NCBI GenBank assembly: GCA_024137785.1
Contig: JAHRHZ010000002.1
Span: 10,705,263 to 10,769,262 of the forward strand
Length of the DNA: 64,000 bases
From: Ginglymostoma cirratum
Taxonomy: Eukaryota
Direction of reading: 5' to 3'
Under the pieces are notes generated by a model. It saw nothing but the letters and a program-made list of their open reading frames with translations. It did not search any database and was not told the origin of the DNA. The position numbers and the translations under genes are program-made. Positions 24,466-58,270 of the stretch are shown piece after piece. Position 1 is the stretch's first letter. Each line of letters opens with the position of its first letter.

Positions 24466-24479
24466 AGTACACACTGTGG

Positions 24480-36493: not shown

Positions 36494-36607
36494 AGAAACC
36501 AAAAGGTAGCATGACGCTATGGTTATTCCTGTTGATCGGTGCTCTGCTCCAACTAGCTCTCCTGTTAATTGTTGTGCCCTACTGTGTGAAGTTACACAGA
36601 ATGAAAG
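36494..36607 (+). CDS. NCR3: Stalk/transmembrane exon EKPKGSMTLWLFLLIGALLQLALLLIVVPYCVKLHRMK
   Basis: Acceptor ttttgtttcttag, donor AAG|GTCAGG, 114 nt, phase 1/1. About 24 hydrophobic residues followed by basic stop-transfer residues. Confidence 0.9.
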
Positions 36608-39518
36608 GTCAGGATGTGTATTTTTTTTGCTGTTTGGCAGATGTAAAGGTTGTGAGATATTGTGTTGCAAACATTTACATTTGTATTCTTAAGGTTGACG
36701 TATCTGATTGGCACTCTTAATCGCTTTGTCTTTATCGATCTCTTGAATTTCCTTCTCCCAAGCTCGAACCATTTGCCACTGTCTGTACCTCATCGTAGGT
36801 ATCACCTGTGGGTCAAAATTCTCACGCACCTTCTCTCCCCTTTCCAAAGCGCACACTACTAAAGATGTTAACCAATTAGAGTGATCGCATCCAGTTCGCC
36901 TGGTATGTTCCATTTCTCAAAAACCTGAGTAAAATCAACCCATAACTGACCTGCATATGCAATCAGAGGACTACACCTATTTAAATCGTCTGTTGGATCC
37001 CCTCTGTTACAACAGATCACAGCTAATGTACTTTCCTTCATACCTTCCAAATCTCCAATAGACACACTAACCATCACTAATTAACTGTTCCAATATAGTA
37101 ACAATCCATAAACACAGCTTTGATAAAAGGCAAACTCAGCAAACACATTGTCTCACATGCAACTCCCACAACAGGCAGAGAATACCCAATTTTTGGCTAT
37201 ACCCAAGAGAAGGAACGATTAAATTTCACTTCTTCAGCAGCCCAACTGCAACTGCTGAGAGCTGAAACTAAAAATCCTGGTTCTATGAGAACTTGACCTC
37301 ACCCTCTTAGGCTGTTTCCGTTGTTCCAACTTTTATCAAAAAAAGCACCTAAGGCCTCACAAGCTGTTTACTTTACTGGCTTTCCAACTAGCCAGCTCTG
37401 CACCTCTGTTTTATCCCTCTCATTAAAAAATAAGAAAATAACCTTTTAAAGCCACTGCATTATCACAAAATCATTTTAGCAATTTCCCCGCACTGCAGTC
37501 ACAGAATTCATTGGGGAAGGCGATGGTTGTGTGGGGGCGCTGAGGGATTAAGTGACCCTGGAAAAGGAGGTAGGGGTCCCCAGTCATTGCCGCGTGCAGC
37601 ATCCTGCTGGGCATTCTTTTCCAGCTTTCCCCAATCTCTTCCGTAATCACTCTGCCCTTCAGGCTGAACTGTCCCAAATACCCACTTAATTCTTTTCTGT
37701 ATCAACAGCTGAGATTTTAATTTATCAATCCGCTGCTAGCATTTTGAACAGTAAGCCACGGAGATTCCTCTTTCTCTGCCTACTTGATACAGAACTTTAA
37801 CAGCAGACTGTAAATTGGCACATTTTCTGTTCAGTTCATTCACAGTCTGTTTGGCCATGTCATGACTCCTGTTTGCACTGGGTACTCCTTAGTAAGCCTT
37901 CTCAGATTGGCTCAGGATGTGGCCCACGTACAACACATTTATCTGACTCCTTTGCTCCTGTTCCGCCAATTTTCTCAGTAACCTTTCCAACTGCTGACAT
38001 AATTTTCCTCATGTAACCTCTCGTTGTCTTCATGTAATATTTTATCCTCTAACTCTCTACCCGTTAACTGCTGCAAACAACTGACTCTTGTTGTAGCCTC
38101 ACTAAGTCAGCTTGGTCGCATGCTTTCCTTGCTCTCCACATGTTACTTCACAACATTTCTGACCAACGGATCGCAGACTCGTTACTAATTTACTGCAACG
38201 CTCAACAACTAGGGCTACGTCTTATTTAGCTCCTTCCTTAATATCTCTGACTGTGCTTGGCAATCTGCCATTCTTTACTCTTAACTCTTTAGGCATCTTC
38301 TAGGAGATACAAGAAGCGACCAGATTCACTTCACAAATTCTGCCATTAGTTTCTCACACTCAGCAAACACCCGCTTTATTCCCAACTGCTGATCAATTCT
38401 CTAAGGCTGGGGAATTCGACTTCTAAACAGCTTAAAGTCCCAGCTTATCAATGGCCACTCAGTGTTGCCCGAAAGGAGTACTCAGACTTTTTTACTCAGA
38501 TATGTGACAGACAAATGACAGGGAACTTCATTAAACAAGCTCTTCATTATTTCAACTCTCAGTTATAGGAAGGATGTTATTGAGCTGGAGAGGGTTCAGA
38601 AGAGATTTAAGAGTATGTTGCTGGGTATGGAGGGTTTGAGTTTTAAAAGAATGCTGCATAAAAGCTGAGACTTCTGTCATTAGAAGTTGAGAGGTGACCT
38701 TACAGAGGTTTATAACATCATGATGGGTATGGATAGGGTCAATGGAATGGTGTCTTTTCCCATTCTTGGGATTTGAAGACTAAGGGGCATATTTTTTAAG
38801 GTGAGACAAGGGATTTCAATGAGGCACAAGGGGAAAATCTTTTCCACAGAGAGTGGTTCACATATGGAATGAAATTCCTGAAGAAGTGGTGGATGGAGGT
38901 ACAGTTACAACATTTAAGGGTCACTGAGATAAGTACATGAATAGGAGAGCTGTGGGGGGGATATAAGCCACGAGCAGGCAGATGTGACTAGTTTACCTTG
39001 GAATCATGGTCAATGCGGACTGGTTGCACCCAAAGGTTTGTTTTCATGCTGTTTGGCGCTATGACCATGACTCAATAGAAGGCATACATTAGTTGCAACA
39101 TTTAATTCTTACTTCACTTAACTTAAATTGAAATTTAACTCACTTCATTTAAATTCACCTTATCTTACTTTGCTTAATTCATATTTAACCCCAATTCATA
39201 CTTTAACTCTATAAGTTTGGCTTGAATGAAATACGATTTGAGTGAAGTGGCCAACATTGCTCTCAGTACAGATATTGCTTTGTGATTCTTTATTTTCTCT
39301 GAAGATCACTTCAGGGCCTGACTTCTCAAATTTGGTCTTGAAGGTTTCTCCTGCAAAAAATTCCTTTGTTCTGTTAAATTATCTCAAAAAGTATGCACCG
39401 CCTACAGAGACTTCTCTGACGCTCAACCAATGGATTGACCAAAGCCAGATCACATTGTTCAATCTCAACTAATGGAGTTTATTGGTAAATAGCTCCCAAA
39501 TGATTACATCAAATAAAC

Positions 39519-39918
39519 NNNNNNNNNNNNNNNNNNNNNNNNNNNNNNNNNNNNNNNNNNNNNNNNNNNNNNNNNNNNNNNNNNNNNNNNNNNNNNNNNN
39601 NNNNNNNNNNNNNNNNNNNNNNNNNNNNNNNNNNNNNNNNNNNNNNNNNNNNNNNNNNNNNNNNNNNNNNNNNNNNNNNNNNNNNNNNNNNNNNNNNNNN
39701 NNNNNNNNNNNNNNNNNNNNNNNNNNNNNNNNNNNNNNNNNNNNNNNNNNNNNNNNNNNNNNNNNNNNNNNNNNNNNNNNNNNNNNNNNNNNNNNNNNNN
39801 NNNNNNNNNNNNNNNNNNNNNNNNNNNNNNNNNNNNNNNNNNNNNNNNNNNNNNNNNNNNNNNNNNNNNNNNNNNNNNNNNNNNNNNNNNNNNNNNNNNN
39901 NNNNNNNNNNNNNNNNNN
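39519..39918. other. Assembly gap (400 N)
   Basis: Run of N. Confidence 1.
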
Positions 39919-40329
39919 TTTATTTCTTAGGTACTTCGCAGTTTGCCTCAACTGCTCCAACACACAGCAACATTTTGGCCGTGCTGTTGTTGAATCAGTT
40001 TCTCCTTGTTGCATCTAAAACATCACAAACAGAAATGTTTCATCGAATTCTGCCATCAAATGCTCTCAGAACTTCTTTAAGGCTGCCCCTTGGTCTATTC
40101 TTTCCGCTGATACATTTTGAGAGAAAAAAATGAATTAAAGTCAATCATATGCATTTGCATTGTTCTTCATTTTGTCTGTCGTTTGTAGTGAATAACTTTG
40201 TGCAATTAATATCTTTAAGTGCAGACTCTACAGTTCCATGCACAAAACTGGCATCAATGAATAATGAGACTTAAGTAATAAGAAATGTCTTCTGTAATCC
40301 AATATTTTTCTTGTGTACCTTTGTTTTAG

Positions 40330-40348
40330 GAGCTCGCCGGGCTCAAAG
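40330..40348 (+). CDS. NCR3: Cytoplasmic micro-exon 1 (19 nt; GARRAQ)
   Basis: Acceptor ctttgttttag, donor AAG|GTGAGT, phase 1 in / 2 out. Confidence 0.8.
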
Positions 40349-40731
40349 GTGAGTGAGCATCAGCAGGTACACATTTACTGGTTAAGAAATGCACTCTGTT
40401 AGCATTTGAAGTGATTGAAAGATTTGTAGACAGTTGAGCAGTAAATTTTATTTCATGCAGATTGTCTGCAACCCATTTTATGCAAGGATACAGGAGCCTG
40501 GAATACTCATCAGAGTTGAGACAGAGCTCCACATAAATGCACCTGAGATGCCCCCATTCTACAAAGTTAAAGGTCAAATTTTGTGAAGTTTTAGTCAGCC
40601 AGGAAAATCTCCTTGTCTCACCAGACATGATGGGTTGAACAGCCTTCTCTCTACTTTAAATACATCCATATTTCTGTGGTCAAATGTTATCAGCAAATGT
40701 GGTTGAGTTATTCATTTTCATTTTTTTGTAG

Positions 40732-40769
40732 ACAAGTCCAAGTTAATTCAGAAATCATCGGCGTAGATG
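40732..40769 (+). CDS. NCR3: Cytoplasmic exon 2 (38 nt; RQVQVNSEIIGVD)
   Basis: Acceptor tttttttgtag, donor ATG|GTACGT, phase 2 in / 1 out. Confidence 0.78.
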
Positions 40770-41178
40770 GTACGTAAAGCTGGTTTTGGTTATATTTGAA
40801 AATAATATAAACTTCAATGGGGTTATTAAAACCCTCAGGATTACCATGATACTGAGTTTAAAATGGTTGAAAAATTTCCAGTTTGACACCCGAGTTACGA
40901 TTCAGAAAAAAAATTCCCAAACATTACTGTTCTCTTAACTCATTTAATAGCTTCTTATAAATGTTTCTATTTCCACAAAGTACTTACCTCCCAGTCAATG
41001 GCATCTGATTTAATCAAAGGCAGCACTTTATTTTCACTCTTCCATTGAACAGAAATCACATCTTTAGAGATAATTACAATTTTCTGCCTCTTAACAGCTT
41101 TTTTTTTAGTCATGGATAATAAGCAGGGGGCTGGATGAACACAGCAGGTCAAGCAGCATCATAGGAGCAGGAAAACTT

Positions 41179-41206
41179 GACGTTTCGGGCCCAAACCCTT
41201 CATCAG
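41179..41206 (-). ncRNA. Minimal type I hammerhead ribozyme core
   Basis: Minus strand CTGATGA-A-GGGTTTGGGCCC-GAAA-CGTC: CUGAUGA and GAAA boxes, GGG/CCC stem II, palindromic ACGU stem III, GUC cleavage triplet. Confidence 0.75.
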
Positions 41207-41458
41207 AAATGCGTGGTCGAGCAGTTTCAAGGCCGAAGAGGTGATGAGAGAGTTGCAGTGGGAGAGATATTCCCTGAGGTTTGTCCGGAGGGAGGAGGGT
41301 AACTTCTTCAGGGTAGGCATCCTTAGAAGAGGCTTCGCAGTGGGGTTAAAATTGTATCAGAGATAAAAGGTACTGCAGATGCTGGAGAATCCGAGATAAC
41401 AAGCAGGGGGCTGGATGAACACAGCTGGTCAAGCAGCATCATAGGAGCAGGAAAACTT

Positions 41459-41486
41459 GACGTTTCGGGCCCAAACCCTTCATCAG
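41459..41486 (-). ncRNA. Minimal type I hammerhead ribozyme core (second copy)
   Basis: Identical to 41179-41206. Confidence 0.75.
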
Positions 41487-44400
41487 AAAATTAGTCATGG
41501 TGGGCACTTACGCAAGTTAGAGGAAAGTAAAGTTCTGTGGGAGAAACAAGTATGTAATTACAGGAATGTGGATATGAATATTAGTGAAAAAATATACACT
41601 TTGTCACACTTGTCTTGTACCCATCAGGCCAATTCACTAATGTAAATACTAAAGTAAAGGGAAAACATATTGCATATCACAGTATTGTATGAGAGAAAAT
41701 GCTAATTGGTTGGCAAATTGCCTCTGACTACAGAGGTGTTGAGATGTAGGATGAACTAGTTCTGGATGACTGACAGTTAACTGCCAAAATTTCATTAAAT
41801 ATTCAACTAGACAGCTTGACACTGATTGTTCTGGGCATTGCCCAACTGATAATCCTAAATTGGTTATCAGTGTAATTCTTCATGAATCAGTATTATATAG
41901 CAAATATTTTCCAATCACAGAATCATCGTAGTGTTGGATGCTGCATTGTGAGGTTTGCAAGTGCAGACTAGTTGCATACCTTTCTTCTTTCACTGAGTTG
42001 GAGGGATATTCAGCGTCGTAACATTCTAGAGGGCTACAGAGATAGGGCTGGAGAGTAGGACTAGCTGGGTAGCATTTTTGGGGGCCAGTACAGGCATGAT
42101 AACTTGAATGGCTTCGTTTTATGGTAAGATTCTGTGATTCTATTATTCTAAGTTCTGACATTCATTGGGACAAATGGCTGACTTTACTAGCATCAGGCCA
42201 ACAATGAAATTCACATGCCACATTAATTAGCTGGGTGATAGGCAGAATGCCTTTTCAGCTTGGCAGGAAAAATGAAACAGATGTGCTTGCTATGACTGAA
42301 ATTTATGATGTGGTATATGCCTTTCAATACCTGGGTGATGCTCGACAAGTAAGCCATATGTTCGTTAGACAAAGACCAAATATCATATAAAATGACATAT
42401 CCTTTCAGTTGTTTGCCACAAGCAGGTGCTGACTACATGCAACCAGCCCATGCAGGCAAAACGCAGACCAAACATTAGATGTGATCCTGTGATTAAACAA
42501 CATTTTCCAAATAATCTTTGGGGGTATGTAAAACATAAACTTTCAATAAAATATGATTCTCTTCAGGTATAACTACATGAAATATGACCAAACCATTATT
42601 TGACAATGGATATATACATTAATAAAATTTAAGGACTGTAGTGAGAGAGTGGGGAAAGTGTGGCGAAGTGGGAGTAACAGACTTGTGAAAGGGACAAGAC
42701 AGACTCCATGGGCTGACACACATTCTACTGAGCTGTATCAGCCTATTCTATGGTTCTATTCTAATTGTGACATGAATACCTGAGATACTCAACTGTTGGA
42801 TACATTGGGGTTGAATTTGGATGTGAATGGGGCTACAGGACATGCTGGAAATTGTATTTTACTGACTGTTATACCAGCTGATGATCGTACACTCATATCA
42901 AAGATAAGATTGAACATTAACCAGGAAATTGGGTGAAAAGATAAAGAAAGAACAAAGAACAAAGAAAACTTACAGCCCAGGAACAGGCCCTTCGGCCCTC
43001 CAAGCCTGTGCCGATCTCAATCCACTGTCTAAACCTATCGCCCAATTCCTAAGTATCTGTATCCCTCTGCTCCCCACCTACTCATGCATCTGTCCAGACG
43101 CACCTTAAATGAATCTACTGTGCCTGCCTCTACTATCTCTGCTGGCAACGCATTCCAGGCACCTACCACCCTCTGTGTAAAGTACTTTCTGCGTGTATCC
43201 CCCTTAAACTTTTCTCCTCTCACCTTGAACGCGTGACCCCTTGTTATTGAATCCCTCATAGATAGTTTTACCTCTCAGATGAAATCACTGTATGTTGATT
43301 TTACTAAGGGGTAAGATTGTTTAGGGTATAGAGCCAATGTTCCGAATATTCTTTGTGGTTTTCACAATTGGCAGTTTCAGGTAAAAATGCAGCTGTTTCA
43401 ATGAAATTTATCAAAATGCATAATTTGAGTCACAGTGTCGTACAGCACAGAAACAGACCCTTCGGTCCAAACAGTCCAAGCTGACCATAATCCCAAACTA
43501 AACTAGTCACTAGGCCCATATCCCTCCAAACATTTCCTATTCATGTACTTATTTAAATGTCTTTTAAATTTTGTAACTGTACCCACATCCATCGCTTCCT
43601 CTGGAAGTTCATTCCCCGCACGAACCACTCTCTGTGTAAAACATAAATGCCCTTCATATCTTTTTTAAACATTTCCCCTCTCACCCTAAAAAATGTCCTC
43701 TTGTCTTTAAATCCCACACCCTCGGAAAAGCACACCTGCCAGTCACCTTATCTGTACCTCATGATTTTATGAACCTCTATAAGCTCACTCCTCAACCTCC
43801 AGTGAAAAAAAGTCCCAGAACATCCAGCCTCTCCTTAGAACTCAAACCTTCCATTCCTGGCAACTTCCTGGTAAATCTCTTCTGAATCCTCTCCAGCTTA
43901 ATAATATCCTTTCTGTCATATGCCGACCAGAACTGAACACAGTAATCCAGAAGAGTTCTCACCAGCACCCCGTAAAACCTCAAACGGATATTGGTTCTTT
44001 TAAAAGACAGTCAGTTGAATAAGCAAACACGATAAACTGAAGGCATTTCATACAATTTATGAGCTGCAATGAGTCTTATGCTTTTATTTGAACATAAGGA
44101 AGCAACTGTATCAATGTTGCAAAACTATTACTGGCCCTAGGGACAAAACTGATGAGTTAAATAACAATCAATTTACACGTTACAGTGCCCTACACACAGT
44201 AACTGGAAGTGTTACTATCAACATTGGTTCATGTTGGAATTACTTATGGGAATATTGTTGAACAGTACACTGCAAGGGTACCTTGCTCTTCTTTGAAAGA
44301 TGCCAGGAAATTTTACTGACTGTGAAATGGTTCCTGTTTAATTGAATGAAGAATGTCTGACAATGCGGCGCTCCCTCAGTTCCAGACAGAAATAAAAAGC

Positions 44401-44542
44401 CATTTTTCTGTTCTCCGATGGTGGATTGTCGCTTGAATCCAGGTCTTTCACTATTTAGTGTTGCGAACTAAGCACAACTGGAAGTATTAAACAGTTTTAT
44501 GGACATACTTATGAGGTAGTATCTCATATATATTCATATAGA

Positions 44543-44855
44543 TGGTGGCTAGTGTTTAGCACTGCTGCCTCACTGCGCCAGGGACCTGGTTCCGTTCCAC
44601 CCTTGGGCGACTGTCTGTGTGGAGCTTGTGCGTTCTCCTCGTGTCAGCATGGGTTTCCGCCAGGTGCTCCGGTTTCCTCTCTCAGCCCAAAGATGTGCAG
44701 GCAAGGTGGATTGGCCATACTAAATTGCCTGTAGTGTTCAGGGGTGTGTGGGTAGGTGGGTTATAAGGGGACAGGTCTGGGTGGGATTCTCTGAGGGTTG
44801 GTGTGGAGTTGTTGGGCCAAAGGGCCTGTTTCCACACTGTAGGGATTCTATGACT
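44543..44855 (+). mobile_element. V-SINE (HE1-like)
   Basis: Full head, core and tail. Confidence 0.85.
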
Positions 44856-45123
44856 ATAAGAAACTCTTTCCATAAAAGTGCCTCTAATGCAACATTTCCA
44901 ACAATTCCAGCAGTTACCTTCTGTTATAGAGTCATAGGGTCATAGAGCATGGAAACAGACCCTTTGGTCTAACCAGTCCATGCCGAACATAATCCCAAAC
45001 ATCCAGCCCCATGCTTGTTATCTCTAAACTAGTCTAATCTGCCTGCTCCCAGTCCATATCCCCCCAAAACCTTTCCTATTCATGTATGTTCTATATTTGC
45101 ATTCTCATGCTTTTGTTTTTTAG

Positions 45124-45164
45124 ATATTCTAACATTACCTGTCCTGGATGAAGTGCAGAATCTG
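45124..45164 (+). CDS. NCR3: Cytoplasmic exon 3 (41 nt; DILTLPVLDEVQNL)
   Basis: Acceptor ttttgttttttag, donor CTG|GTAAGT, phase 1 in / 0 out. Confidence 0.82.
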
Positions 45165-46879
45165 GTAAGTAACCTAAAAGGAATACAATCACAACACTTG
45201 AAATCTGCATTTGCAGATTAGGATTGAAACAAAATATACCCAAGTCCCCATATACAAAATCAAATACAAGGTTGTAGAAATACCTAGACTGTTCCTGAAA
45301 ATGATTGCCATTAAAGACCAGAAATAGATTTTGTTAAAAATAACTGGGACGCTGACACTGCTCACTATTATACTCAAGGTCTGCTGCCTCAATTCAAAGT
45401 GTAGTTAATAATTTGCTGTCAGACATCCCACGCTTCCTTATTGGCTCTGATATTGTGGTCTCATCACTGCGAGCAACGCACCGCCTTGAACTTGGGATAA
45501 TTGATGATTAGGTTTCCAGTATAATGATGGCAGATAACAATTAAAGCAAGCACATTGAGAAGTAAATGACCCGAGCATCAAAAAACAGTGACAGACAACT
45601 GTATTGCTTCTGAAAAAGTTCACAAGTATGAAGTCTCATTTCTGAAACAGGTAATGAGTTTGGAAATATCATTGTATGTGTACTGAGAGAGTGTGTATAC
45701 GTTTTAATCCTAACTGTATTTCACAATCTTATTTCACTTTCTGTTCTTGATTTAAATCCAGTTAATACTCTTTGCTTTATCTATTACGGTTTGCATTCTG
45801 GGATTACAAGTGGCAGCATAAATTGCTGGTAGCCAGCAGATAATATTCAGTTCCACTGTTGTCAACAAGATTAAACATCAAGGACAGTGTTTAATCAGAA
45901 GTCAATTCCATACCATCTGCTTTATGCCATTTGTTAGAATATCTTTTATCCCTATGTGAGTCAGCGTGGATTGTTCAATTGGATAGTTCCTGGTCTTGCT
46001 GGATATGTTAGACTACCTGCAGATAGCACTCTTAAATTAATTTAAAACTTCTCTGCAGACTAAAATCTGTAAAACAAAGTTGTATACAACCGTAGCTGAG
46101 ACAATGAATGATCGCCATTGATCAACTGTGAAACTCAGACATTACATTCTGCATCGATAAAGCTGATACCAAATAACTGTAAGGAATATGATCACCTTTC
46201 ACTTCTAATTGTTTCAGAGAAAACATATTATTTCAATGTTTTACCAAAAGGAAGTCGTAACACACGTTCATTGGCAAACAACAGGAAGAGCATGGTTGAG
46301 TCTCATTTGGAGACAGTGCCAAAGTTCTTAGAGTCTCCAATAACAAGCGAGAGATTGTTTAATCTGTGGTGAGGATTACCTTAAAAATCTACATTTCACT
46401 GATCCCTACTAGTTAAATTGTACATTTTAAGATCAATATCCTTGATATTCAGACTCCTTCCAGTCAAATGAAGACATTTACTTCATGCAGGAGAATATTT
46501 GTCTCTATGGACTCAACATGACATGAAATTTCTGCATGTTTATTGACAACAATATCAAAACAGTGAGCTGTTCTGGCATGTTGGTGACATGGGAAGCATG
46601 CCAGTGAGACTCTTTAGGTCCAAGCATGCTGATGATGTCGTAAGCATGGGAGCTCAAGGGATTTTCTTACTCTGTTCTCACAATGTGTTAAACATAGTTG
46701 GGATATTTCGTTTTTACCAGTGATAACTTAAAACACAGTGAAAGGAGTTTCATGTCCAATATTACTGCATTTATTTTAGGGTGGCTACATTTGAAGCATT
46801 CATTGGTGCAACAGCAGTTCTATTCAGTTATGTTTAAACTGCAGTGAAGCACAATGCTAATTGGAGCACACATGCATGC

Positions 46880-47210: not shown

Positions 47211-47478
47211 TATAACTTTAACTCCAACAGTAGAGAATTATGATTTTTTTTCTGTGACAGTTAATAGATGTATGGTTATGTCAATGTATAAAAATGTCTT
47301 GGTCTATAAAAATGTCCATTTGATTGGGTAATGTTTTATTTTATGACAGGATCAAGACAAGAGTAGACTGGAATCTGATGCACTGTTCATGGTATGGAAG
47401 TATTCCACTTTGTTCAATTATGTTCCCCTTCATTGAAAACACAGTCATCATTAACGGAGTTTGGTTTGTGTTCCGTAG

Positions 47479-47522
47479 GTTGAAAACAATGAAGACACAT
47501 CGATTTACACACCTATGGAAAG
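47479..47522 (+). CDS. NCR3: Cytoplasmic exon 4 (44 nt; VENNEDTSIYTPME, YxxM motif)
   Basis: Acceptor gtgttccgtag, donor AAG|GTGAAT, phase 0 in / 2 out. Acidic residues precede the Tyr. Confidence 0.82.
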
Positions 47523-48828: not shown

Positions 48829-48866
48829 CCTAAAGGCCTTCAACAACTCAACAGCGACTGAGATGG
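48829..48866 (+). CDS. NCR3: Cytoplasmic exon 5 (38 nt; SLKAFNNSTATEM), GC donor (alternative GT donor ends the exon at 48870)
   Basis: Strong acceptor (T-run...ctgacag). Only the phase-2 frame is open, which matches exon 4. Donor TGG|GCAAGT. Confidence 0.7.
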
Positions 48867-48963
48867 GCAAGTAACTCAATTCATTTAAATGTTTGGAAGA
48901 GCTGGTGAGAAATTAGAAGTGCATCTTTGTGGACTAACATAAACCACTTAAACCTTGCTTCTA

Positions 48964-49055: not shown

Positions 49056-49107
49056 AAACCTTGCTTCTATCTTTCTTACCATATATTGGGAGATCTTCTG
49101 GAAATAG

Positions 49108-49142: not shown

Positions 49143-49436
49143 GTAAGGTTTTGCTCTGGTGTCATGACAGTGCATTCATCTGGCACCTTTCAAGCTCAGA
49201 AGCGATTACAGCCAATGAGGGACTTTTGAAGTGTAGTCATTGATGCAGTGTTAAAAACACAGATTTGTATAAGGCAGTGTCCCAGAGGAAGCAATTGATA
49301 ATGATAAAGTCTAATGTCACTTATTCAGGAAAGCACGTCAGTCAAACCACTAGAGTGAACTCTCCTGCGGTTCTTCAAAATTATGTCATGGGATTTTTTG
49401 AATTTGATTTATTATTGTCACGTGTGCTGAGATACA

Positions 49437-49978
49437 ATGGCCTCCTCTACATCGGGGAACTTCCCAGAGGCTTGGAGACTGCTTTGTGGAACACCTACGC
49501 TCTGTTTGCGACAAATGACAACACCTCCCAGTTGCGAACCACTTCAACTCTCCCCTCCCACTGCCTGGATGACATGTCCATCCTTAGCCTCCTCCAGTGT
49601 CACGATGATGCCACCCGAAAAATGGGGGAACAACACCTCATATTCCGCCTTGGAAGACGACAGCTCAATGGTCTCCAAGTGGAATTTAAAAGCTTCAAAA
49701 TCTCCCCAGCCCCCGACCTCATCCCAAGACCAGCCTCCCCTCTGATCCCCACCTCATTGAACTGACCATCTTCTCTCCCACCTATCCACTCCTCCCACCT
49801 CACTGACCAATCCCCACCACTGCCAACCTGCTATCACTGCCATCCCACTGTCTATTTATTTCAGAGCCCCCGTTCCCTCCCCCTTTTCTGAAGAAGGGTC
49901 CCGAACTGAAAGGTCAGCTTTCCTGCTCCTCTGATGTTGCCTGGCCTGCTGTATTCATCCATCTCCACACTGTTATTA
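49437..49978 (+). mobile_element. Penelope-like element 3' end (GIY-YIG endonuclease remnant plus pseudo-LTR)
   Basis: GLLYIGE...PSH..DMSILSLLQCH.DATRKMGEQHLIFRLG. Degenerate hammerhead at 49888-49915. Confidence 0.8.
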
Positions 49979-50480
49979 CAGTGAAAAGTGTTGTCTTATG
50001 TGCTTTATAGGCAGATGGTACTATACAAGGACATCAGGGCAACAGGACAGAGTGCATGTTATGGAGTTGCAGCCACAGAAAAGGTGCAGTGAGAGATCAA
50101 CATTAACATTTAAAAGGCCTATTCAAAAGTCTGATAACAAGGAAGAAGCTGTTCGTCAAATGTTTGTATATTCTACCCAGCGGAAGAGATGGAAGGGAGT
50201 ATAACCAGGGTGGGAGGGGTCTTTGATTATGATGGTTGCTGACCTGAGGCAGTGGGAAGTATAGGTGGAGTCAATGGATGGAAGGTAGGTTTGCATGGTG
50301 GACTGGGCTCTGGTCACATCTCTGCAGTTTCTTGTGGTGTTGGGGAGAGATATATCATGCTATGATATATCCAAATCAGCTGCTTTCTTTGGTGCACCTA
50401 TAAATATTTCTAAGAGTCTTTATGGGCATGCAGAATTTCCTTAGGCTCCTGACGAAGCAGAGTTGTTGTTGTGCTTTTAC
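49979..50480 (-). mobile_element. Rex1-like LINE 3' fragment
   Basis: Similar to 52320-52850 and 16200-16900. Confidence 0.7.
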
Positions 50481-51541
50481 ATCCACTAGAATTTGCAAAA
50501 TTCGGTAGCACTCGGGTAGCATTTCACGAGTCCAGATTTGAGATTAGAGTGAAGCTTGATTCCATAATCTTTTGACTCAGTAGTTCTCCTGGGTGAATGC
50601 AGAAGGCAGCTTGTTTCTGCTATCATTATTTGAATTAGCGACAGAGAGAGAAGAGTAAATTCTCCACAGTGCATGGCCTAAATGTAGTATGTAGAACTGA
50701 TTTGAAGTGCCTTAACACAATCTCTAGTGTTTTTTGGTTCATAACCGGAAATTACTCATAAATTACCTCAAAACCATTTATCCCCTTCGCTGTTCTGAGA
50801 AATAGAAACATTACAATGAATTTGCTTCCTTGAGATTTATATTGGACCCATGCTACATCTAATATTGAACGTAAAAACAAATAGTGGCTTTCATTTGACC
50901 GATGACAAAGGAACAAATTTTCAGAGTAACTACCTGCCTCAATATGCAATGTCAAATGAAAGGTACTACCTGGAAATTGTAACAACATGGTAGATGTAAC
51001 TTGGTAATTATTTTTATTCATCAATGGGATGATGACACTGTTGACTAGGCCAGCATTTATTGCCCATTCATAATTGCCTAAAGGGCAGTTAAGAGTGAAC
51101 CATATTGGCTGTGTGTCTGGAGTCACATGTAGATGAGAGTCGGTAAGGATGACAGTTCCTTTTCCTGAAGGACAAAACTGAACTAGATGGGTATTTCCTG
51201 ACAATTGACAATGGATCCATGGTCATCAATAGACTCTTAATTCCAGATATTTATTGAATTCAAATTCTACCATCTGCCATGGCAGTATTCAAACCCAGGT
51301 CCCCAGAACACTGCCTGGGTCTCTGGATTAACAGTCCACCCATAATACTGCTAGGCCATCCTCTCCCTTTGGTATACGACATAGCGAAGACTAATCGTGT
51401 TTGTTTCACAGTTCTCTACTTGCTATTAAGTCATCGGCATTCATGATGTAAGCCAACTATTGCTTTTTTTAAAAGATGATTGTCAGTTAGAAATTATATA
51501 AATATAGGTGTGTTCATTGGTATTTGTCTCTTTTCCATCAG

Positions 51542-51562
51542 TTTGGCTCAACTACTGGCAAG
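51542..51562 (+). CDS. Possible optional 21-nt cassette exon (FGSTTGK, phase 0/0)
   Basis: Acceptor tttgtctcttttccatcag, donor AAG|GTATTG. Frame-neutral, so the ORF does not require it. Confidence 0.3.
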
Positions 51563-52319
51563 GTATTGCAGAATTAAGTTCTCCTTCAAAAATGCCATCG
51601 ATAATTGTGATTTACTGCAATTGTGTGGGAATGAGGGTATGCTAAGATGCAAGATATTCCACCTCTCAAGATGTCCACTTTTCAGGGTAAACGTTGTCGG
51701 CATTTTGACAAACCTCATTCATTCCAGCATATGGCTTTCATAAAACAGACTGAGGCATCCAAGTGCATATCAATGAGATGAACTGGTCATTTATGTTACT
51801 TTACTGCTGTATCTGGAACTGTTATTTTTAAAGTAAACATTCATAACGATAATGATTTCACTCAATGCAATCACCATTATTTTTTATTCCATCGTGAGAT
51901 GTGCATTGGAACTGGAATTTTTTTGCCCTATTCCTAACTGCCCTTGGAAAGAGGGCAGTTGAGAGTCAGCAACATTACTGTGGGTCTGGAGCAAGATGTA
52001 GGTCAGACAAGATGATGAATGCAGATTTCATTCCTTCAAGGGAAATACAACAAGCAGGATTTTTGAAAAACATTGAGATTGCTTCTTTCAATTTCAGATT
52101 CATTGTTTGAGCCACCACTGATAGGACTTAAACTCACGCCCAACAGACTGAACATCAGTCTTGGAATGCTAGTTCACTGGTGCTGTTACTACATATTAGC
52201 TAATGTGGTGAAGTGGTGGGTCGGTGGGATAGAGATCAGACGACAATTTAGCACTCTGATAGCATTGCATTTGAGTTCCAGTCTGGATTTGAGAGTTGGG
52301 TGGAGCTTGACATCATAAA

Positions 52320-52850
52320 ATTTTGATTCGATTTGATTTATTGTTGTCGTACGTACCGAGATGCAGTGAAAAGTGTTCTTTTGCGTACTATACAGGCAGA
52401 CTGTGCAATACAAAGTGCATCAGGGTAGCAGAATAGCGTGCAGAATACAGTGTTACAGGTGTAGAGAAGGTGCAGAGAGAGAGAGAGAGGTCAGAATTAA
52501 CATTTGAGAGGTCAGTTCAAAAGCCCAATAACAGCGGGGGAAAAGCTGTTCCTGAATCCGAGCATACATGTGTACAAAGTTTTATGTCTCCTGCCTGACT
52601 GAAGGTGGGGTAGAAAGAGTATAACCATGGTGGGAGGGGTCTTTGATTATGTCGGTTAGTTTCTTCAGGCAGCAGGAAGTTTAGATCGAGTCAAAGGAAG
52701 GAAGGCTGGTTTGTGTGATGGATTCGGCTGTGTACATGACTCTCTGTAGTTTCTTGTCGTATTGGGAAGAGCAATTGTCACAACACACTGTGATGCATCC
52801 AGATAGGATGCTTTCTATGGTGCATTTATAAAAATTAGTCAGTGTCTTTG
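52320..52850 (-). mobile_element. Rex1-like LINE 3' fragment
   Basis: KTLTNFYKCTIESILSGCITV...KKLQRV, plus tail. Confidence 0.8.
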
Positions 52851-53074
52851 ATTCACAGGCGACAGGATATACCTCATTGAGCAGCAATCAGCATTATACT
52901 GGGGGGGTATAGGTGAGGATAGCCACAGCAAGTATCTTTATGAGAAGGGCTATGGCAATCCAGGAATGAATAGATGGCTTTATAGAAATGTGAGGACAGG
53001 CTATTCTCGGCTGTACGATCGTACAATTAGAAGGTGGCTCAACTGATTCCAGAACAAATCTGCTATTTTTTCAA

Positions 53075-53296
53075 AGGTAACAACGTGTAGAGCTGGATGA
53101 ACACAGCAGGCCAAGCAACATCAGAGGAGCAGGAAGGCAGATGTTTCGGGCCTGGACCCTTCTTCAGAAAAATGAAGAAGGGTCCATGCCCAAAACGTCA
53201 GCCTTCCTGCTCCTCTGGTGCTGCTTGGCCTGCTGTGTCCATCCAGCTCTACACCTTGTTATCTCAGATTCTCCAGTATCTGCAGTTCCTACTATC
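53075..53296. mobile_element. Fold-back (head-to-head) Penelope pseudo-LTR dimer with 16-bp TSD
   Basis: Arms 53075-53167 and 53172-53264 are near-perfect reverse complements. TSD TCTGCTATTTTTTCAA at 53059-53074 and 53297-53312. Confidence 0.85.
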
Positions 53297-53422
53297 TCTG
53301 CTATTTTTTCAATCTCTCTTCCAAACTGTCATGAACAAAGCATCAATCTACCAGGCTTTACTTTGCCTTCCTGTGTTGAACTCCATTGACTTTTTCTTAC
53401 CCATTATATTTTGTTCTTGCAG

Positions 53423-53451
53423 ATTGCCAAACTCCTCCGCCCAAACCATGG
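53423..53451 (+). CDS. NCR3: Cytoplasmic exon 7 (29 nt; IAKLLRPNH)
   Basis: Acceptor ttttgttcttgcag, donor TGG|GTAAGC, phase 0 in / 2 out. All three frames are open, so the frame is inferred from its neighbours. Confidence 0.7.
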
Positions 53452-53794
53452 GTAAGCAATAATCTAAAGTGCATAGTTCATCAACAAATGATACAAAAGT
53501 GTAATCTTTAGTTGCAATCATTTCACAGGCGCATCTGTCACCATTGATAAATATGTTATTTATTTCATGCTGTTCCTGATCAAACTGCCTTTCAAAATTG
53601 TAACCTGTTGGAACCCAAAGAATTGCATTTTTCCCCAAATTTCAGATGAGATTTTCTACACATGTAAATTAGCGAGCAAATTGGCTGGCTCTCATAAATC
53701 AACATACTGAACAATTACAGAACATGACTGAAACAACATGAAAATAAAGCATTCAGCACACTTAGTTGAAAGATTACGAGATGAGACAAAATTA

Positions 53795-54125
53795 GAGTAG
53801 AACCACCCCAGTGCGGAAGCAGACCATTCGACCCTTCAAAACTAAACTGACTCATCAAAGAGCATCCCACTCAGATTCATCACCTTACCCAGTCTCGAAT
53901 TCGACATTTCCCATGGCTAACCTACACATCCCTGGACTGGCCAATTTAGCATGGAAAATACATCTAACCTGCACATCTTTGGACTGTGGGAAGAAACCGG
54001 ATCACCCAAAGAATACACACACAGATGTAAGGAGACTGTGCAGACTCTACACAGACAGTTGCCTGAGGGTAGGATCGAACCCAGGTCCCTGGTGCTGTGA
54101 GGCAGCCGTGCGAGCCACTGAACCA
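53795..54125 (-). mobile_element. V-SINE (HE1-like)
   Basis: Reverse-complement head, core and tail. Confidence 0.8.
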
Positions 54126-54324
54126 ATCCTTAAATGGGCACTTTTTCTTTTCTTTATTCATTCACGGGATGAGGGCATCACTGGATAGGCCAGCATTTAT
54201 TGCCCATCCCTAATTGCCCAGAGGGCAGCAAAGAGTCAACCACATTACTGGGGGTCTGGAGTCACATGTAGGCCAGGCCTGGTAAGGATGGCAGTTTCCT
54301 TCCTAAAGGACATTAGTGAACCAG

Positions 54325-54740
54325 GTCCTGCTGTGTTCATCCAGTTCCACACCTTGTTATCTTGAACTCTCCAGCATCTGCAGTACCTATTATCTCTGAA
54401 TAATTTTAATCCCAGTGCGAAGCCTCCTCTCTGGATACCTACCCTGAAGAAGTTACCTTCCTCCCTCCAGAGATCTCTCTCCCCCTGCAACTTGACTGAC
54501 GTATCTTCTCCCTACTCCCCCACCTGTACTCACCTTTACTGGCTCCATTCCTGCCTCTTTGACTTGTCTGCCTCCTCTCCACGATCCATCTTCTATCCAC
54601 CTCCCCATATTTATTTCAGAACCCTCTTCCCCTCCCCCATTTCTGATGAAGGGTCGAGGCCCAAAACGTCAAGCTTTCTTGCTCCTATGATGCTGGTTGG
54701 CTTGCTGTGTTCATCCAGCTCCACACCTTGTTATCTCGCG
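54325..54740 (+). mobile_element. Internally deleted Penelope-like element inserted in a tRNA-SINE
   Basis: pLTR remnant, 5' region shared with 41210-41394, 3'UTR, and a pLTR with a mutated hammerhead at 54643-54670. Confidence 0.75.
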
Positions 54741-55917
54741 TTTTAAGAACAATCGATAATGGATTCATGGTCATCCTCAGATTTTTAAGTGTAGGTATTT
54801 TATTGGATTCAAATTCCACCATCTGCTGTAGCAGGATTCGAACCAGAGTCCCCAGAACATTACCTGGGTTTCTGGATTAACAGTCCAGTAATAATACCAC
54901 TAGACCATTGCCGCCCCTTGAAAGCTTTGTTGCATTTATGGCCATTACTTTCTCAAAATTGCTTGCATTTGACAACATTCCTTGCTTCATCTCGATAGAA
55001 AAGGCTGGCCACTTGTGCAAATGTTATGTAACCGAAGCGCGTGGAGTAAGGTTAATTTAGCCTAACTGAACATTTTGTTTAATTAGACAACTTCATCAAA
55101 TGGTGTACAATATGTAACATTAGTGTTAGACAAGACATGCGGATCATCTTCTCTGAACGTGATTGTGGAAGGCGATGATTTAGAGTGAGTCAAAAATTTC
55201 TCTCTTTGAAATGACTCAAATGTCATATTTGCCTTATTCACTTGAAACAGAAATGACTGGAGGGTTGCTTAAAAAGAAAAACTTTTATTCACCGTTTCCG
55301 CAGTGCTCCAACAATCACAGTTGGGGAGTTAACATTGTCACTTAATACATCATTGAAAAAAACATTATTCGAGATACGCACTTCCTTTCCAAAACCATTC
55401 TTTCTGTAATTAGCCTCAGCCTGTTGGTCAATATGACATACTGGAATCAATTTATTTCTTGTTGACTTCTGTCAATGAGTTCAATTCTTCCCAAATTCTG
55501 GCAGAGCACGTCAGTTAGTCCACTGCTGAGCAATGCTTGGAAGCTGCTGGATGGATTTCCTGAATCCTGCCTCAGGTCTGGTAATTTGACTAGTCGAATT
55601 ACATCTGGACCGCAACACCTCACATTCACCTTTAAATTAAGGCAAAGTTAGCGTCTAGACTATCTTCTTAATACATTTTGAGGGGGTTTGGTCTGGTTCA
55701 TAACCAGAACGAAAAATGAGGCTTCATTGAAATAAAATGGGGCACAGTGGGTGGTTGGGGAGGCTGAAGATATTTGTTTTAGAACACATGCCCTGAGTTT
55801 CTGAGGCATTCTTGTTTAATTATGACTTTTTCGATGTTTACTATCATCTCAGTAGTTTTTAATTCCTTGATGAGTATTTTATTCTCATGTTTGCAATCTC
55901 TTCCTCTCCTTTTGCAG

Positions 55918-55952
55918 GCATGATTATGGATATGACGAGCTTAACGTAACAG
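55918..55952 (+). CDS. NCR3: Cytoplasmic exon 8 (35 nt; GHDYGYDELNVT, YxxL motif)
   Basis: Very strong acceptor ctcttcctctccttttgcag, donor CAG|GTGACT. Only the phase-2 frame is stop-free. Confidence 0.8.
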
Positions 55953-57570
55953 GTGACTAACAAGGAAGTATATATTTTGGGGAAGCTGGATGGTTTATTA
56001 TATCTTGCAACCTTTGTCTTGTAACCTCAAGAATTTGAGGCAAGTAGTGATTAATTCAATATGGCTTTGCTCCCCCTGTTGACCGTAAGTCCCCCCTGTT
56101 TATTGGTGCAGGATATTGTTGTGAGTGAAGCAGACAGTTTCCCAGAGTCAACGGAGTGAAATGCTGGCTGATTCGGTATTTCTGATAACTTCCCACAAAG
56201 CGAGTTTCGATCCCATCTTTCCAGCTCAGAAAATGACCTGTCAGTTGATACATTTTGACGTTCCTTCCGTGTATGACTCAGAGGGACGTAAAGTAACAGG
56301 ACGTTGAAGTGAAAGCGATGATTATGGAGAGACTTGTCTTAAGGTCCCTTTGTTTCAACTGATGCTGGTTACTGTTAGCACATAAAACACTACCTCCTAT
56401 TTTGCTCCCTTTGAAATACCTGCCCAGATGTAGCGATTTCTGTGGTACACGTTGCATATTTTCCCGGTTACATTGAATATGGTACTAAATAAAAGTGATC
56501 TATAACCCTGCAGCAGTGGTGATGTAGGCAACCAACTTCATCAACTATTCCATTTGAGGAATTCTCACAGTCAGCAATGTTTGAATTTAAATTGAGAATG
56601 TCTTCACCGTTGATTTTAAAACTTGATGAAATAAGGATACAGTTTTTTTGAAAATACATATTTTTTTTCTCTCACTGTGGAGACATCCAAGATTTCCCAT
56701 CAAAAGAATCTTTACAGTGCCAGCAAGTAAGTCATTTCCAAGTGAAAGCTAATACAGGTCTCTTTAAAGAAGGTGTATTTTAGGCATTTGTTTTACTCTG
56801 ACTGATAGTGCAGGACTGGGAAGTTCAGTAATATTCCATTGCTTGGGGGATTTCGGGAACACATTCTTTGGAGCAAGGCAGAATCACTCGAGCAGCAGCT
56901 CTGGGGTCCTCCACATTATTAAGTACATGTACAGTGTCCAGACGATAATGCCAGTTTCAGTGCAATTATGACGATGGTAGTGAAGGCTAGCAGTGCCGCT
57001 GTCATTATCACTTCAAAACTTACAGAATTTATGTAATATCTCTTTGTGGAATTAAATCCATTTTATAATGCGTTCAAGGTGAACAGGACCACCTTTTTAT
57101 TCACCATCCCTAGTAGTTCTGTAAAGCTAATTGTGGTATCAGTTCTCGTGGTGGAAGTACTTCCACCATTTTATTCGGTTGGTAATGTCAGGATTTTGAT
57201 ACAGTGCCCATAAAAACTCGGATATATGCCCACGATGGCAACCTGTTGCTTGGCATTTATGCTGTCAGGATCTTGCAGCTGCCACAGAATGAAACAGCAC
57301 AGAAGGAGGCTATTCAGGACAGTGCACCAGTGTTAACCCTTTCAAATAGCAACCCAATTTATCCCATTTACCTGCAACCCTGCAGGAAAAACTTTGAACA
57401 CTTTAACTGTAAATATGTAGAATAAAATTCCTGGCATGATCTTTAAAATTGCTATGCTATCAATGCAAGTTTAAGGAACTAAGGATTGACACTGTTGTTC
57501 TGAGACTGTTTCCTTGTGGGAATGAGACATAAAACTATTTACTTGTACTTCTCTCTCATTTAATTCTCAG

Positions 57571-57611
57571 CCAAACGGTGTCTTAAACCTGAAAGCATAC
57601 CAAAGGACGAG
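57571..57611 (+). CDS. NCR3: Cytoplasmic exon 9 (41 nt; AKRCLKPESIPKDE)
   Basis: Acceptor ctcatttaattctcag, donor GAG|GTAAGA, phase 1 in / 0 out. Confidence 0.8.
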
Positions 57612-58222
57612 GTAAGATAACAGTGACAGTGCCCTTCACTTGTGTAAGCCAAGTTGGCATTTAATTCAATGCCAGTTCCAATTAAAGATTAAAAATATGA
57701 GCCAGTTCCAATTAAAGATTGGCAGCTAATTGCCATCCGCAGAAGGTGACAATTAATGGTTGGAAAGTAAGATGACATTCATTTTTGGAGGGTTTTTGTT
57801 GTGGTGGAGGAAGCTGAAAAGATGGATAAGGTCAACTGGAGTTCTTTATCCATTGTTCATTAACATTGAGGCATTTATACAATCCCTTCAAAGTGTGTTT
57901 TGATTATTGTGCTTAACAGAATTATTCATATTTAATAGTATCTCATCAAATTGGACTTGGGTCAACAAAGCAAACATGGAATATTCTGAACCATTAGAAA
58001 ATAAAACTGAGGGAAACAGACAGTCATTAGGATTGCGATTCTCACATCTTTTACACTAATGAGCAAATTGTATCAGACTTATTGTTTGCATTTGCAATTA
58101 AAGCAACCTATATGCACCCTGTGTTAACATGAAAATCTATAGGATGGGGCATTCGTGGAGTTTGCTTTAACCGGTGTTCAACTGTACTGCTTAACCATGG
58201 TTCCTCTTCATAATTTGTGCAG

Positions 58223-58270
58223 GAAAATGGAGAAAATCCTCAGGAGGGCATTGAAGTATTGAATGAATAG
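58223..58270 (+). CDS. NCR3: Terminal coding exon (ENGENPQEGIEVLNE*)
   Basis: Acceptor cttcataatttgtgcag, phase 0, TAG at 58268-58270, followed by AT-rich 3'UTR-like sequence. Confidence 0.72.
   Translation, partial: ENGENPQEGIEVLNE

Follow-up and report, generated by a model that had tools for sequence, protein, structure and literature searches.

The window, a 64,000-nt stretch of the Ginglymostoma cirratum genome, contains on its + strand an intact gene of 14 exons that runs from a leader exon at 31257 to a stop codon at 58268–58270 and encodes a type I protein of 320 aa. The protein comprises a leader, a single germline-joined VJ-type V domain, a short stalk, a transmembrane (TM) segment and a long tail (~163 aa) that is spliced from 11 exons of 19–98 nt. 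Relatives were found by a full HMMER search and aligned to the window by local tblastn, with exons searched singly. Close relatives, namely P0153 (Stegostoma tigrinum LOC132206215), P0156 (Chiloscyllium punctatum XP_072406317) and P0165 (Rhincodon typus LOC125486942), match the window exon by exon, giving 14 exons, all 14 of which are compatible in a phase check; among the 13 donors a single one is GC and the remaining 12 are GT. The features are as follows.

31257–31299, + strand: leader exon (MNPSTILWILAVFS plus 1 nt), donor gtaagt; tblastn with the leaders of P0001, P0005 and P0165 (87–93% identity) and phase check
34153–34485, + strand: VJ-type Ig V exon, phase 1 to 1, ending in J-like YGNGTQLTVR; 87% identity to the Stegostoma NCR3-like protein P0001 and 83% to Rhincodon P0165
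36494–36607, + strand: stalk/TM/juxtamembrane exon (E KPKGS MTLWLFLLIGALLQLALLLIVVPYCV KLHRMK); 90% identity to Rhincodon P0165
39519–39918, no strand: run of N (assembly gap) within the intron that separates the TM exon from t1
40330–40348, + strand: t1, 19 nt (G-ARRAQ-), phase 1 to 2, strong acceptor and gtgagt donor; counterparts GAQPAQ in Stegostoma and GAQRAQ in Rhincodon, the length being too small for a similarity score
40732–40769, + strand: t2, 38 nt (R QVQVNSEIIGVD), phase 2 to 1; tblastn with P0153 (77% identity) and phase check
45124–45164, + strand: t3, 41 nt (D ILTLPVLDEVQNL), phase 1 to 0; tblastn with P0153 (35 bits) and P0165 (82% identity)
47350–47391, + strand: t4, 42 nt (DQDKSRLESDALFM), phase 0 to 0; tblastn
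47479–47522, + strand: t5, 44 nt (VENNEDTSIYTPME), with YxxM at Tyr220; AG/GT splice sites; tblastn
48829–48866, + strand: t6, 38 nt (S LKAFNNSTATEM + G), phase 2 to 1, predicted GC donor gcaagt; tblastn
53423–53451, + strand: t7, 29 nt (D CQTPPPKPW), phase 1 to 0; 80% identity to DCQIPPPKLW of P0153
55087–55184, + strand: t8, 98 nt (TTSSNGVQYVTLVLDKTCGSSSLNVIVEGDDL), with the ITIM VQYVTL at Tyr256; 87% identity to P0153 (E = 4e-12)
55918–55952, + strand: t9, 35 nt (E HDYGYDELNVT), with YxxL at Tyr285; AG/GT splice sites; 100% identity to P0153 and P0156
57571–57611, + strand: t10, 41 nt (A KRCLKPESIPKDE), phase 1 to 0; 73% identity to P0153 and phase check
58223–58270, + strand: t11, last coding exon (ENGENPQEGIEVLNE, then stop); 69% identity to P0153; X3 contig
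58271–59270, + strand: probable 3′ UTR, to an AATAAA at 59246; X3 contigs, with the poly(A) signal found by scan and the 3′ end predicted

The tail of the Stegostoma tigrinum LOC132206215 model (P0153) gives nine collinear + strand tblastn matches to the window at 25–60 bits, and because the reversed window, searched as a control, reaches a top score of only 21 bits, the tail-exon matches lie above chance. Exon collinearity holds against P0156 and P0165 as well. A splice-site scan alone yields 69 candidate micro-exon readings, more than can be used, and becomes informative only alongside the homologues. The reading frame is independent of the assembly gap, since the relatives show no missing residues at the corresponding junction (...KLHR(A/M)KG-AQ(P/R)AQ-RQ..., with zero extra residues). 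The window's own protein is absent from the matches of a word search that took the Stegostoma tail as query, so there is no existing annotation for comparison, and Rfam returned nothing at gathering threshold over 31000–60000. The initial annotation of this locus had described a 285-aa protein with a ~128-aa tail built from ten exons of 19–48 nt. Nine tail exons within the 19–48 nt range were recovered with compatible phases, but the original ten could not be reproduced, and the lengths have to be revised to those given above, as the earlier model did not account for the 98-nt ITIM exon and the 29-nt t7.

The ranking of PDB matches, used as a proxy for a V-domain tree, places the V exon closest to human NKp30, at E = 7e-11 when the sequence is searched singly and at E = 2.5e-20 when a shark profile is used; the second-ranked PDB family stands at E = 1.9e-8, and no CD28, CTLA-4, ICOS or PD-1 chain is found among the 60 PDB matches listed. 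The named non-shark matches of the V domain are NCR3 of frogs and turtles, and the exon, which is a germline-joined VJ unit, carries the J-like motif GxGTxLxV in its terminal residues. These sequence comparisons support the membership of the V domain in the NKp30/NCR3 family, as had been proposed for it. Human NKp30 is structurally near CTLA-4 and PD-1 (PMC6514059). The shark V domain lacks a MYPPPY-like loop, and the stalk, EKPKGS, lacks a Cys.

The TM segment contains zero R, K, D or E, in agreement with the initial annotation; its sole polar residue is a Gln in the middle of the membrane span, and a juxtamembrane Cys is present. A TM arginine that pairs with CD3zeta or FcRgamma is a hallmark of mammalian NKp30 (PMC6514059). 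Xenopus NCR3 (P0126) is likewise without a TM Arg, which suggests that the Arg is a trait of the amniote form rather than of the NKp30 family as a whole. The absence of the Arg, taken with the conservation of the tail motifs across elasmobranchs, makes the earlier suggestion that the receptor signals on its own plausible; however, because the position of the Gln is occupied by Glu in several relatives, including that of Stegostoma, the TM segment may still engage a partner or form a dimer.

The tail carries three tyrosine motifs, namely SIYTPM (YxxM), VQYVTL (a canonical ITIM) and GYDEL (YxxL with an acidic lead-in), of which the first and third had been noticed before and are confirmed here on exons with AG/GT splice sites. 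YxPM, the ITIM and YxEL are all kept in sharks and a ray. The ITIM is present in 7/7 long-tail relatives from six genera (as VQYATL, IHYATL, IQYASI, VQYATI, IQYAVI, IQYTEI and VQYSAL). The distal Yx[ED]L is found in seven of the eight relatives that reach that point, the exception being Heterodontus P0012, in which Phe replaces Tyr (GFAEL), and IYxPM in six of eight, Heterodontus P0154 having IDTPM and P0012 no such motif. The YDEL tyrosine lies 29 residues downstream of the ITIM tyrosine. A spacing of 29 residues is typical of ITIM pairs, as in PD-1, KIR and PECAM-1. An ITAM reading of the two YxxL-type tyrosines was rejected, since an ITAM needs them 6–12 residues apart. The −2 residue of GYDEL is Y, D or F, here and in the relatives, where a second ITIM or ITSM, placed ~20–30 residues downstream for tandem SH2 binding, would have I, V, L, S or T; the hydrophobic −2 residue of an ITIM is thus lacking. 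With its acidic lead-in (EHDYGYDEL here, EQDDGYDEL in Mobula) the distal motif resembles a hemITAM (DEDGYxxL), a likeness at the level of the motif only, and such a motif would be activating; the YxxM could likewise contribute a positive PI3K signal. YTPM, YVTL and YDEL each also fit YxxPhi, and the YVKM of CTLA-4 has both sorting and SH2-docking roles. That the tyrosines serve mainly as sorting or endocytosis signals, rather than as SH2 docking sites, nevertheless seems to us highly improbable, given that the conserved V or I at ITIM −2 and the acidic context of YDEL are not needed for sorting and that three motifs at ITIM-like spacing exceed what trafficking needs.

Transcript data aligned over 53400–59399 show that the ITIM exon is transcribed and spliced. 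Contigs from two studies (X1 and X3, both guessed to be RNA) end precisely at both edges of this exon: in the X1 contig the aligned part covers only 55086–55184, with 29 and 27 extra letters flanking it, and the X3 contig ends at 55184 with 118 further letters beyond. In principle the t8 contigs could stem from a paralogue with an identical exon. An X1 contig begins precisely at 53423, the start of t7, which is suggestive only. Contigs also break off at the acceptor of the last exon: an X3 contig aligns from 58221, preceded by 15 spliced letters, with 0 mismatches over 252 nt, and X3 contigs together span 58221–58778 with 0–1 mismatches. Some pieces of X1 are unspliced, and one, which carries 17 mismatches, is divergent and probably derives from a paralogue. 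Over the same 53400–59399 interval, raw-read depth is very low (below 1 in the single poly(A) run; in X9, too few reads for any of the listed joints), and run X10 has no aligned reads.

At the end of t6 an alternative GT donor lies after 48870, 4 nt downstream of the GC donor; joined to t7, it produces a frameshift, with a stop codon reached in t8. We therefore place the end of t6 at 48866, followed by the 29-nt exon, because this is the only route that keeps the ITIM exon in frame. A non-canonical GC donor (at 48867), the stop codon met on the GT route, the very low depth of run X9 and the presence of several paralogues nearby would fit a decaying duplicate in a tandem cluster of NKp30-like genes, in which the GC donor is a splice lesion and the tail is frameshifted. 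Against this, all 14 exons are open and the remaining splice sites intact, the G before GCAAGT conforms to the standard GC-AG donor consensus, the 3′ UTR of this very copy is transcribed and spliced, and the TM exon has 90% identity to its orthologue-like counterpart in the whale shark; we consider decay very unlikely.

By phase arithmetic, t4 (42 nt) and the block t6 + t7 + t8 (165 nt) can each be skipped in frame, and in-frame joins that omit the ITIM are possible from t5 to t9 and from t6, by its GT donor, to t9. The t4 counterpart is a cassette in Heterodontus, in which isoforms P0014 and P0157 differ by exactly the t4 segment, and Heterodontus isoform P0154 lacks the t6–t8 block. Reading past the t5 donor gives MER and a stop, just as Rhincodon model P0165 ends in YTPMER, and P0165 and Heterodontus P0002 both stop shortly after the YxPM motif. 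Alternative use of the small exons probably tunes which tyrosine motifs are present. These observations admit a dual or switchable receptor, in which splicing of the t6–t8 cassette or an early end after t5 would give ITIM-bearing inhibitory forms and activating forms with YxxM and a hemITAM-like motif. The annotated Heterodontus isoforms differ by precisely these frame-preserving blocks, t6 ends in tandem GC and GT donors, and human NKp30 changes function through alternative tails (PMC6514059). The Heterodontus models, however, are automated predictions of a different paralogue, and the short Rhincodon model may be a mere truncated prediction. We regard a switchable receptor as rather unlikely.

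The same ITIM-less forms bear on the earlier proposal, built on a model without the conserved, transcribed ITIM exon, that the receptor is a costimulator of the CD28/ICOS type, signalling mainly through YxxM (PI3K p85) and YxxL from a tail without an ITIM. YTPM is indeed present and conserved, the in-frame joins that bypass t8 would supply the required tail, and the Heterodontus and Rhincodon models that skip t6–t8 or end after YxPM are in line with it. Yet the ITIM exon is found in every long-tail relative and in spliced contigs of the same species, the placement of the ITIM 29 residues upstream of YDEL resembles the layout of inhibitory receptors, the V domain is not nearest to CD28 or CTLA-4 among the 60 PDB matches listed, and the MYPPPY-like motif and stalk Cys are both absent. 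We regard the costimulator as unlikely.

Taken together, we consider it reasonably probable that this is an intact 14-exon orectolobiform gene for a self-signalling, probably inhibitory NKp30-type receptor with an ITIM tail. The receptor, whether inhibitory or dual, is probably nearer to PD-1, BTLA or PECAM-1 than to CD28. We infer that binding of a B7H6-like ligand would lead Src-family kinases to phosphorylate the tail, whereupon the ITIM and the distal YxxL would together bind SHP-1 or SHP-2 through their tandem SH2 domains and damp activation; the YxxM may add, as it does in CTLA-4, a docking site for PI3K p85 or an AP-2 endocytosis signal. A bolder proposal, which we hold to be speculative and unlikely as a whole, is that the elasmobranch NKp30 lineage is an ancestral self-signalling co-receptor whose gene toggles between an inhibitory tail (t6–t8 included by way of the GC donor) and an activating one (the cassette skipped, or the tail ended after t5), that the conserved mid-TM Glu/Gln drives hemITAM dimerisation, and that mammalian NKp30 with its TM Arg is a late simplification.

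NKp30-family receptors of sharks carry a conserved tail of their own with tyrosine motifs, among them a canonical ITIM; if these function as their sequences suggest, the receptors would not be adaptor-dependent activators in the mammalian manner, a distinction relevant to the evolutionary split between the NKp30/B7H6 axis and CD28/B7 co-signalling. The analysis also provides a correct exon model for a type of gene that automatic annotation has truncated or misnamed in several shark genomes; names in use there include ‘protein turtle homolog’, ‘SIRP beta-2-like’ and ‘polymeric immunoglobulin receptor-like’. The literature searched contained no text on shark NKp30 tails. The novelty is modest: the initial annotation had fairly remarked that it would lie only in the architecture, but this architecture is already contained in public, uncharacterised annotations, relatives being annotated though unnamed in other sharks and a ray, and amphibian NCR3 already has an ITIM and no TM Arg.

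The nearest counterparts are P0153, P0156 and P0165, whose V domains are 72–87% and TM exons 66–90% identical to those of the window and which have the same tail, sharing as a group IYTPM, the ITIM and HDYGYDELNVT. All three are automated ‘uncharacterized protein’ models: P0153 begins inside a V domain, P0165 ends after YTPMER, and P0156 starts with repeat-derived sequence and continues through the t4–t5 intron; Stegostoma has Glu in place of the TM Gln. Human NKp30 (NCR3; PDB 3NOI, 3PV6) is likewise a type I protein with a single VJ-type V domain, but it has a TM Arg and a short tail without tyrosine motifs and is encoded by four exons, whereas the shark gene has 14 exons and no TM Arg. Xenopus tropicalis NCR3 (P0126, XP_031756258) resembles the shark protein in lacking the TM Arg and in carrying a C-terminal ITIM (LVYSTV), so the NCR3 family already has ITIM-bearing, apparently self-signalling members; its tail of ~38 aa, however, has this single motif, is without YxPM or DYGYDEL and shows no sequence similarity to the shark tail. 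CD28, ICOS and CTLA-4 have, like the shark protein, a tail YxxM and an ectodomain of V type that falls in the broader CD28/NKp30 structural group, and differ from it in the V domain, in the loop and stalk Cys described above and in the ITIM. PD-1 and BTLA, whose ligands are B7-like, also combine one V domain and an uncharged TM segment with an ITIM and a second tyrosine motif ~25–30 residues off, and BTLA has in addition a third, Grb2/PI3K-type site; their V domains belong to another family, with no match among the 60 PDB entries listed, their second motif is an ITSM and their tails are not divided into micro-exons. In PECAM-1 (CD31) the tail is encoded by very short exons, an ITIM (VQYTEV) and a second motif lie on separate exons, and splicing edits signalling. 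PECAM-1 has six C2-type Ig domains and a tail without sequence relationship to that of the shark receptor, but it shares with the shark gene both the micro-exon tail and the placement of the ITIM and the second motif on exons of their own.

The splice-site scan was by itself uninformative about the cytoplasmic tail, returning 69 candidate micro-exon readings, and the tail exon boundaries were instead settled by long-tail NKp30-like proteins found among the database relatives compared (P-numbers), namely Scyliorhinus P0004, Mobula P0009, Heterodontus P0014/P0157, P0154 and P0012, Carcharodon P0151, Stegostoma tigrinum P0153 (LOC132206215), Chiloscyllium punctatum P0156 (XP_072406317), and Rhincodon typus P0165 (LOC125486942). 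The Stegostoma tail aligned to the window as eleven collinear pieces, all on the plus strand, nine of them scoring 25–60 bits; in a reversed-window control no hit exceeded 21 bits. Splice sites of the leader, V, and transmembrane (TM) exons match the consensus, and the phases of the three exons fit together.

Exons of the rebuilt 14-exon gene (t1–t11, cytoplasmic-tail exons)
31257-31299, +, leader exon, MNPSTILWILAVFS
34153-34485, +, V exon, J-like YGNGTQLTVR at its end
36494-36607, +, TM exon
40330-40348, +, t1, 19 nt
40732-40769, +, t2, 38 nt
45124-45164, +, t3, 41 nt
47350-47391, +, t4, 42 nt
47479-47522, +, t5, 44 nt, SIYTPM
48829-48866, +, t6, 38 nt
53423-53451, +, t7, 29 nt
55087-55184, +, t8 (the ITIM exon), 98 nt, VQYVTL
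55918-55952, +, t9, 35 nt, DYGYDEL
57571-57611, +, t10, 41 nt
58223-58270, +, t11, 48 nt, stop codon included

Exon-by-exon tracking gave consistent phases throughout and a product of 320 aa. When full-length relatives were searched by tblastn against the whole window, no further leader, V, or TM exon came to light, so the downstream tail exons have no other 5′ partner here. The initial annotation had proposed a tail of ten exons of 19–48 nt and a protein of 285 aa. Nine of the eleven rebuilt tail exons, both of its quoted tyrosine motifs included, stand within the 19–48-nt tail it described, whereas the 98-nt t8 cannot be among its exons; neither its tenth exon nor its total of 285 aa was recovered. 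The structural description was thus mostly right but missed the key exon.

A run of Ns (39519–39918) sits in the 3.7-kb intron that separates the TM exon from t1. Across the TM/t1/t2 joints the window reads KLHRMK-G-ARRAQ-R-QVQV, Stegostoma KLHRAK-G-AQPAQ-R-QVQV, and Rhincodon KLHRMK-G-AQRAQ-R-QFQV; because no residues are missing, the reading frame is independent of the gap. Together t1 and t2 (57 nt) encode a membrane-proximal 19-aa unit (QxQRQxTDIPxxTS...) that occurs in triplicate in one horn shark paralogue, P0157 (Heterodontus francisci, residues about 168–225), a pattern that indicates duplication of the micro-exon pair.

Assignment of the V domain to the NKp30 family held up both with the single exon and with a profile built from the window V exon and five shark relatives. 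The four top solved-structure matches of the exon are human NKp30 entries (E about 7e-11), followed by CD276 (8e-6); the profile gave NKp30 at 2.5e-20 (76 bits) and the next family at 1.9e-8 (37 bits), with no CD28, CTLA-4, PD-1, ICOS, or BTLA chain among the 60 solved-structure matches listed. In a HMMER search of 1.84 billion proteins, the named matches outside elasmobranchs were NCR3 of frogs and turtles. The closest proteins come from Rhincodon, Stegostoma, and Chiloscyllium, as fits an orectolobiform shark.

The tail tyrosines of the window protein are Y220, Y256, and Y283/Y285, with 29 residues separating the ITIM tyrosine from the YDEL tyrosine. All seven relatives with models extending that far carry a canonical ITIM (VQYATL, IHYATL, IQYASI, VQYATI, IQYAVI, IQYTEI, and VQYSAL); they span six genera and include the ray Mobula. 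The two motifs singled out initially, YTPM and YDEL, are also kept in relatives: IYxPM is found in six of eight (the two exceptions, both from Heterodontus, are P0154, with IDTPM, and P0012, with no such motif), and the distal motif follows the consensus (H/Q)D(Y/D/F)(G/E)Y(D/E)EL, in which the second tyrosine alone is conserved, except in P0012, where it is lost (GFAEL).

Exon t6 ends in tandem donors (window 48863–48876), a GC donor (G|GCAAGT) and a GT donor (gtaact) 4 nt downstream. Only when t6 ends at 48866, at the GC donor, and is followed by t7 is t8 in frame; in all relatives the t6/t7 junction is of phase 1, reading M-(D/G) ahead of the t7 peptide. The GT donor followed by t7 leads to a stop codon inside t8; it is in frame only if spliced straight to t9, with the t6–t8 cassette skipped, giving ...TEMGKHDYGYDEL, and this splice was probably the one chosen in the initial annotation.

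Transcript matching covered 53400–59399 and used contig sets from two studies (X1 and X3), both presumed to be RNA; every listed run came from a single organism. One 155-nt X1 contig (depth 16.7) matches 55086–55184 only, without mismatches, and has overhangs of 29 and 27 letters at its two ends. The match of a 178-nt X3 contig likewise stops at 55184, and the 118 letters beyond equal in length t9, t10, and 42 nt of t11. Another X3 contig, 267 nt long, opens with 15 spliced letters and then matches 58221–58472 without mismatches; more X3 contigs extend coverage to 58778. The contig ends at the limits of t8 and the spliced start at t11 indicate that the ITIM exon is spliced at its two boundaries and that the last-exon acceptor is in use, and the 3′ UTR pieces point to a transcript of the window copy, not of a paralogue. 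X1 also includes unspliced pieces and one piece with 17 mismatches, and depth over the exons in a poly(A) raw-read run (X9) is below 1. We judge the observation to be genuine; the gene appears to be both intact and expressed.

At 53800–55000, within the intron immediately preceding the ITIM exon, an expressed interspersed repeat gives a very deep signal in the RNA runs (about 180,000 at most in contigs), with numerous chimeric joints; this repeat also supplies a spurious N-terminus to P0156, residues 3–31 of which match 54042–54128. Retroelement remnants with reverse-transcriptase and integrase-like ORFs lie upstream of the gene (8083–10563), and reverse-transcriptase C-terminal fragments (...VQFWSP.YRKDI..LE.VQ...) recur on the minus strand in its introns (35382–35951, 43035–43259, and 43792–43983). 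The low-complexity region 20000–27500, strongly strand-skewed and with ORFs rich in Ser/Pro/His/Thr or in Cys/Val on opposite strands, looks like simple repeats rather than genes. No Rfam family, hammerhead included, reached the gathering threshold in 31000–60000.

The TM segment quoted in the initial annotation is present in the TM exon and contains none of R, K, D, or E; a mid-membrane Gln is its sole polar residue. The juxtamembrane Cys is likewise there, just after the segment (VVPYCVKLHRMK). "Uncharged" is accurate for the window copy, but the family keeps a polar mid-TM position: Glu occupies it in Stegostoma, Carcharodon, and two Heterodontus proteins; the window, Rhincodon, and Mobula have Gln; Chiloscyllium has His or Asn. 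This position (within window TM 36532–36576) is polar in all relatives compared (P0153, P0151, P0014, P0002, P0165, P0009, and P0156), the tally being four Glu, three Gln (window counted), and the remainder His, Asn, or Thr. A polar position kept across the family could serve dimerisation or pairing. A conserved TM Glu is unusual among ITIM receptors, a possible sign of dimerisation or of a partner whose TM carries a basic residue. Some NKp30-like relatives combine a short tail with a TM Arg, among them P0132 (Dermochelys NCR3) and the basking shark protein P0017 (Cetorhinus maximus XP_078422539; TM IVRGVIIITMII), which suggests that the shark family pairs activating with inhibitory forms.

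Inhibitory receptors of the immunoglobulin superfamily such as KIR, LAIR-1, PD-1, and PECAM-1 recruit SHP-1/SHP-2 via tandem SH2 domains. The standard signature of such receptors is found here: the TM lacks a basic residue, and the tail has a canonical, conserved, transcribed ITIM followed by another YxxL at the spacing of an ITIM pair. By analogy, the protein is probably a self-signalling NKp30-family receptor of inhibitory or co-inhibitory type; we infer the sign of its signal from these features. SHP-1 or SHP-2 would dock on the ITIM and distal YxxL with their tandem SH2 domains. The CD28-like costimulator proposed initially, without knowledge of the ITIM exon, is to be replaced by this ITIM-centred reading. 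The YxxM of CTLA-4 binds p85 or AP-2, and that of the shark receptor may do likewise.

We keep alive the alternative that the protein is a dual receptor and not purely inhibitory. The distal motif lacks the −2 residue of an ITIM and has an acidic, hemITAM-like lead-in (DDGYDEL in Mobula), and annotated Heterodontus isoforms skip exactly the frame-preserving t6–t8 (P0154) or t4 (P0014 compared with P0157). Two models, Rhincodon P0165 (...YTPMER) and Heterodontus P0002, stop just past YxPM; the P0165 ending is a read-through of the t5 donor, and the same read-through hits a stop in the window. Alternative tails alter the function of human NKp30 too (PMC6514059).

In the literature searched, of which coverage was partial, we found no published account of the long shark NKp30-like tail, and public annotations label the shark and ray proteins that share exactly this tail "uncharacterized" or give them misleading names. 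Mammalian NKp30 has a short tail and a TM Arg and is partnered by CD3zeta or FcRgamma (PMC6514059); the shark gene differs from it in lacking the TM Arg. Xenopus tropicalis NCR3 (P0126, XP_031756258) also lacks the TM Arg and carries a C-terminal ITIM, LVYSTV, so that ITIM-bearing NCR3 relatives are already present in public databases.
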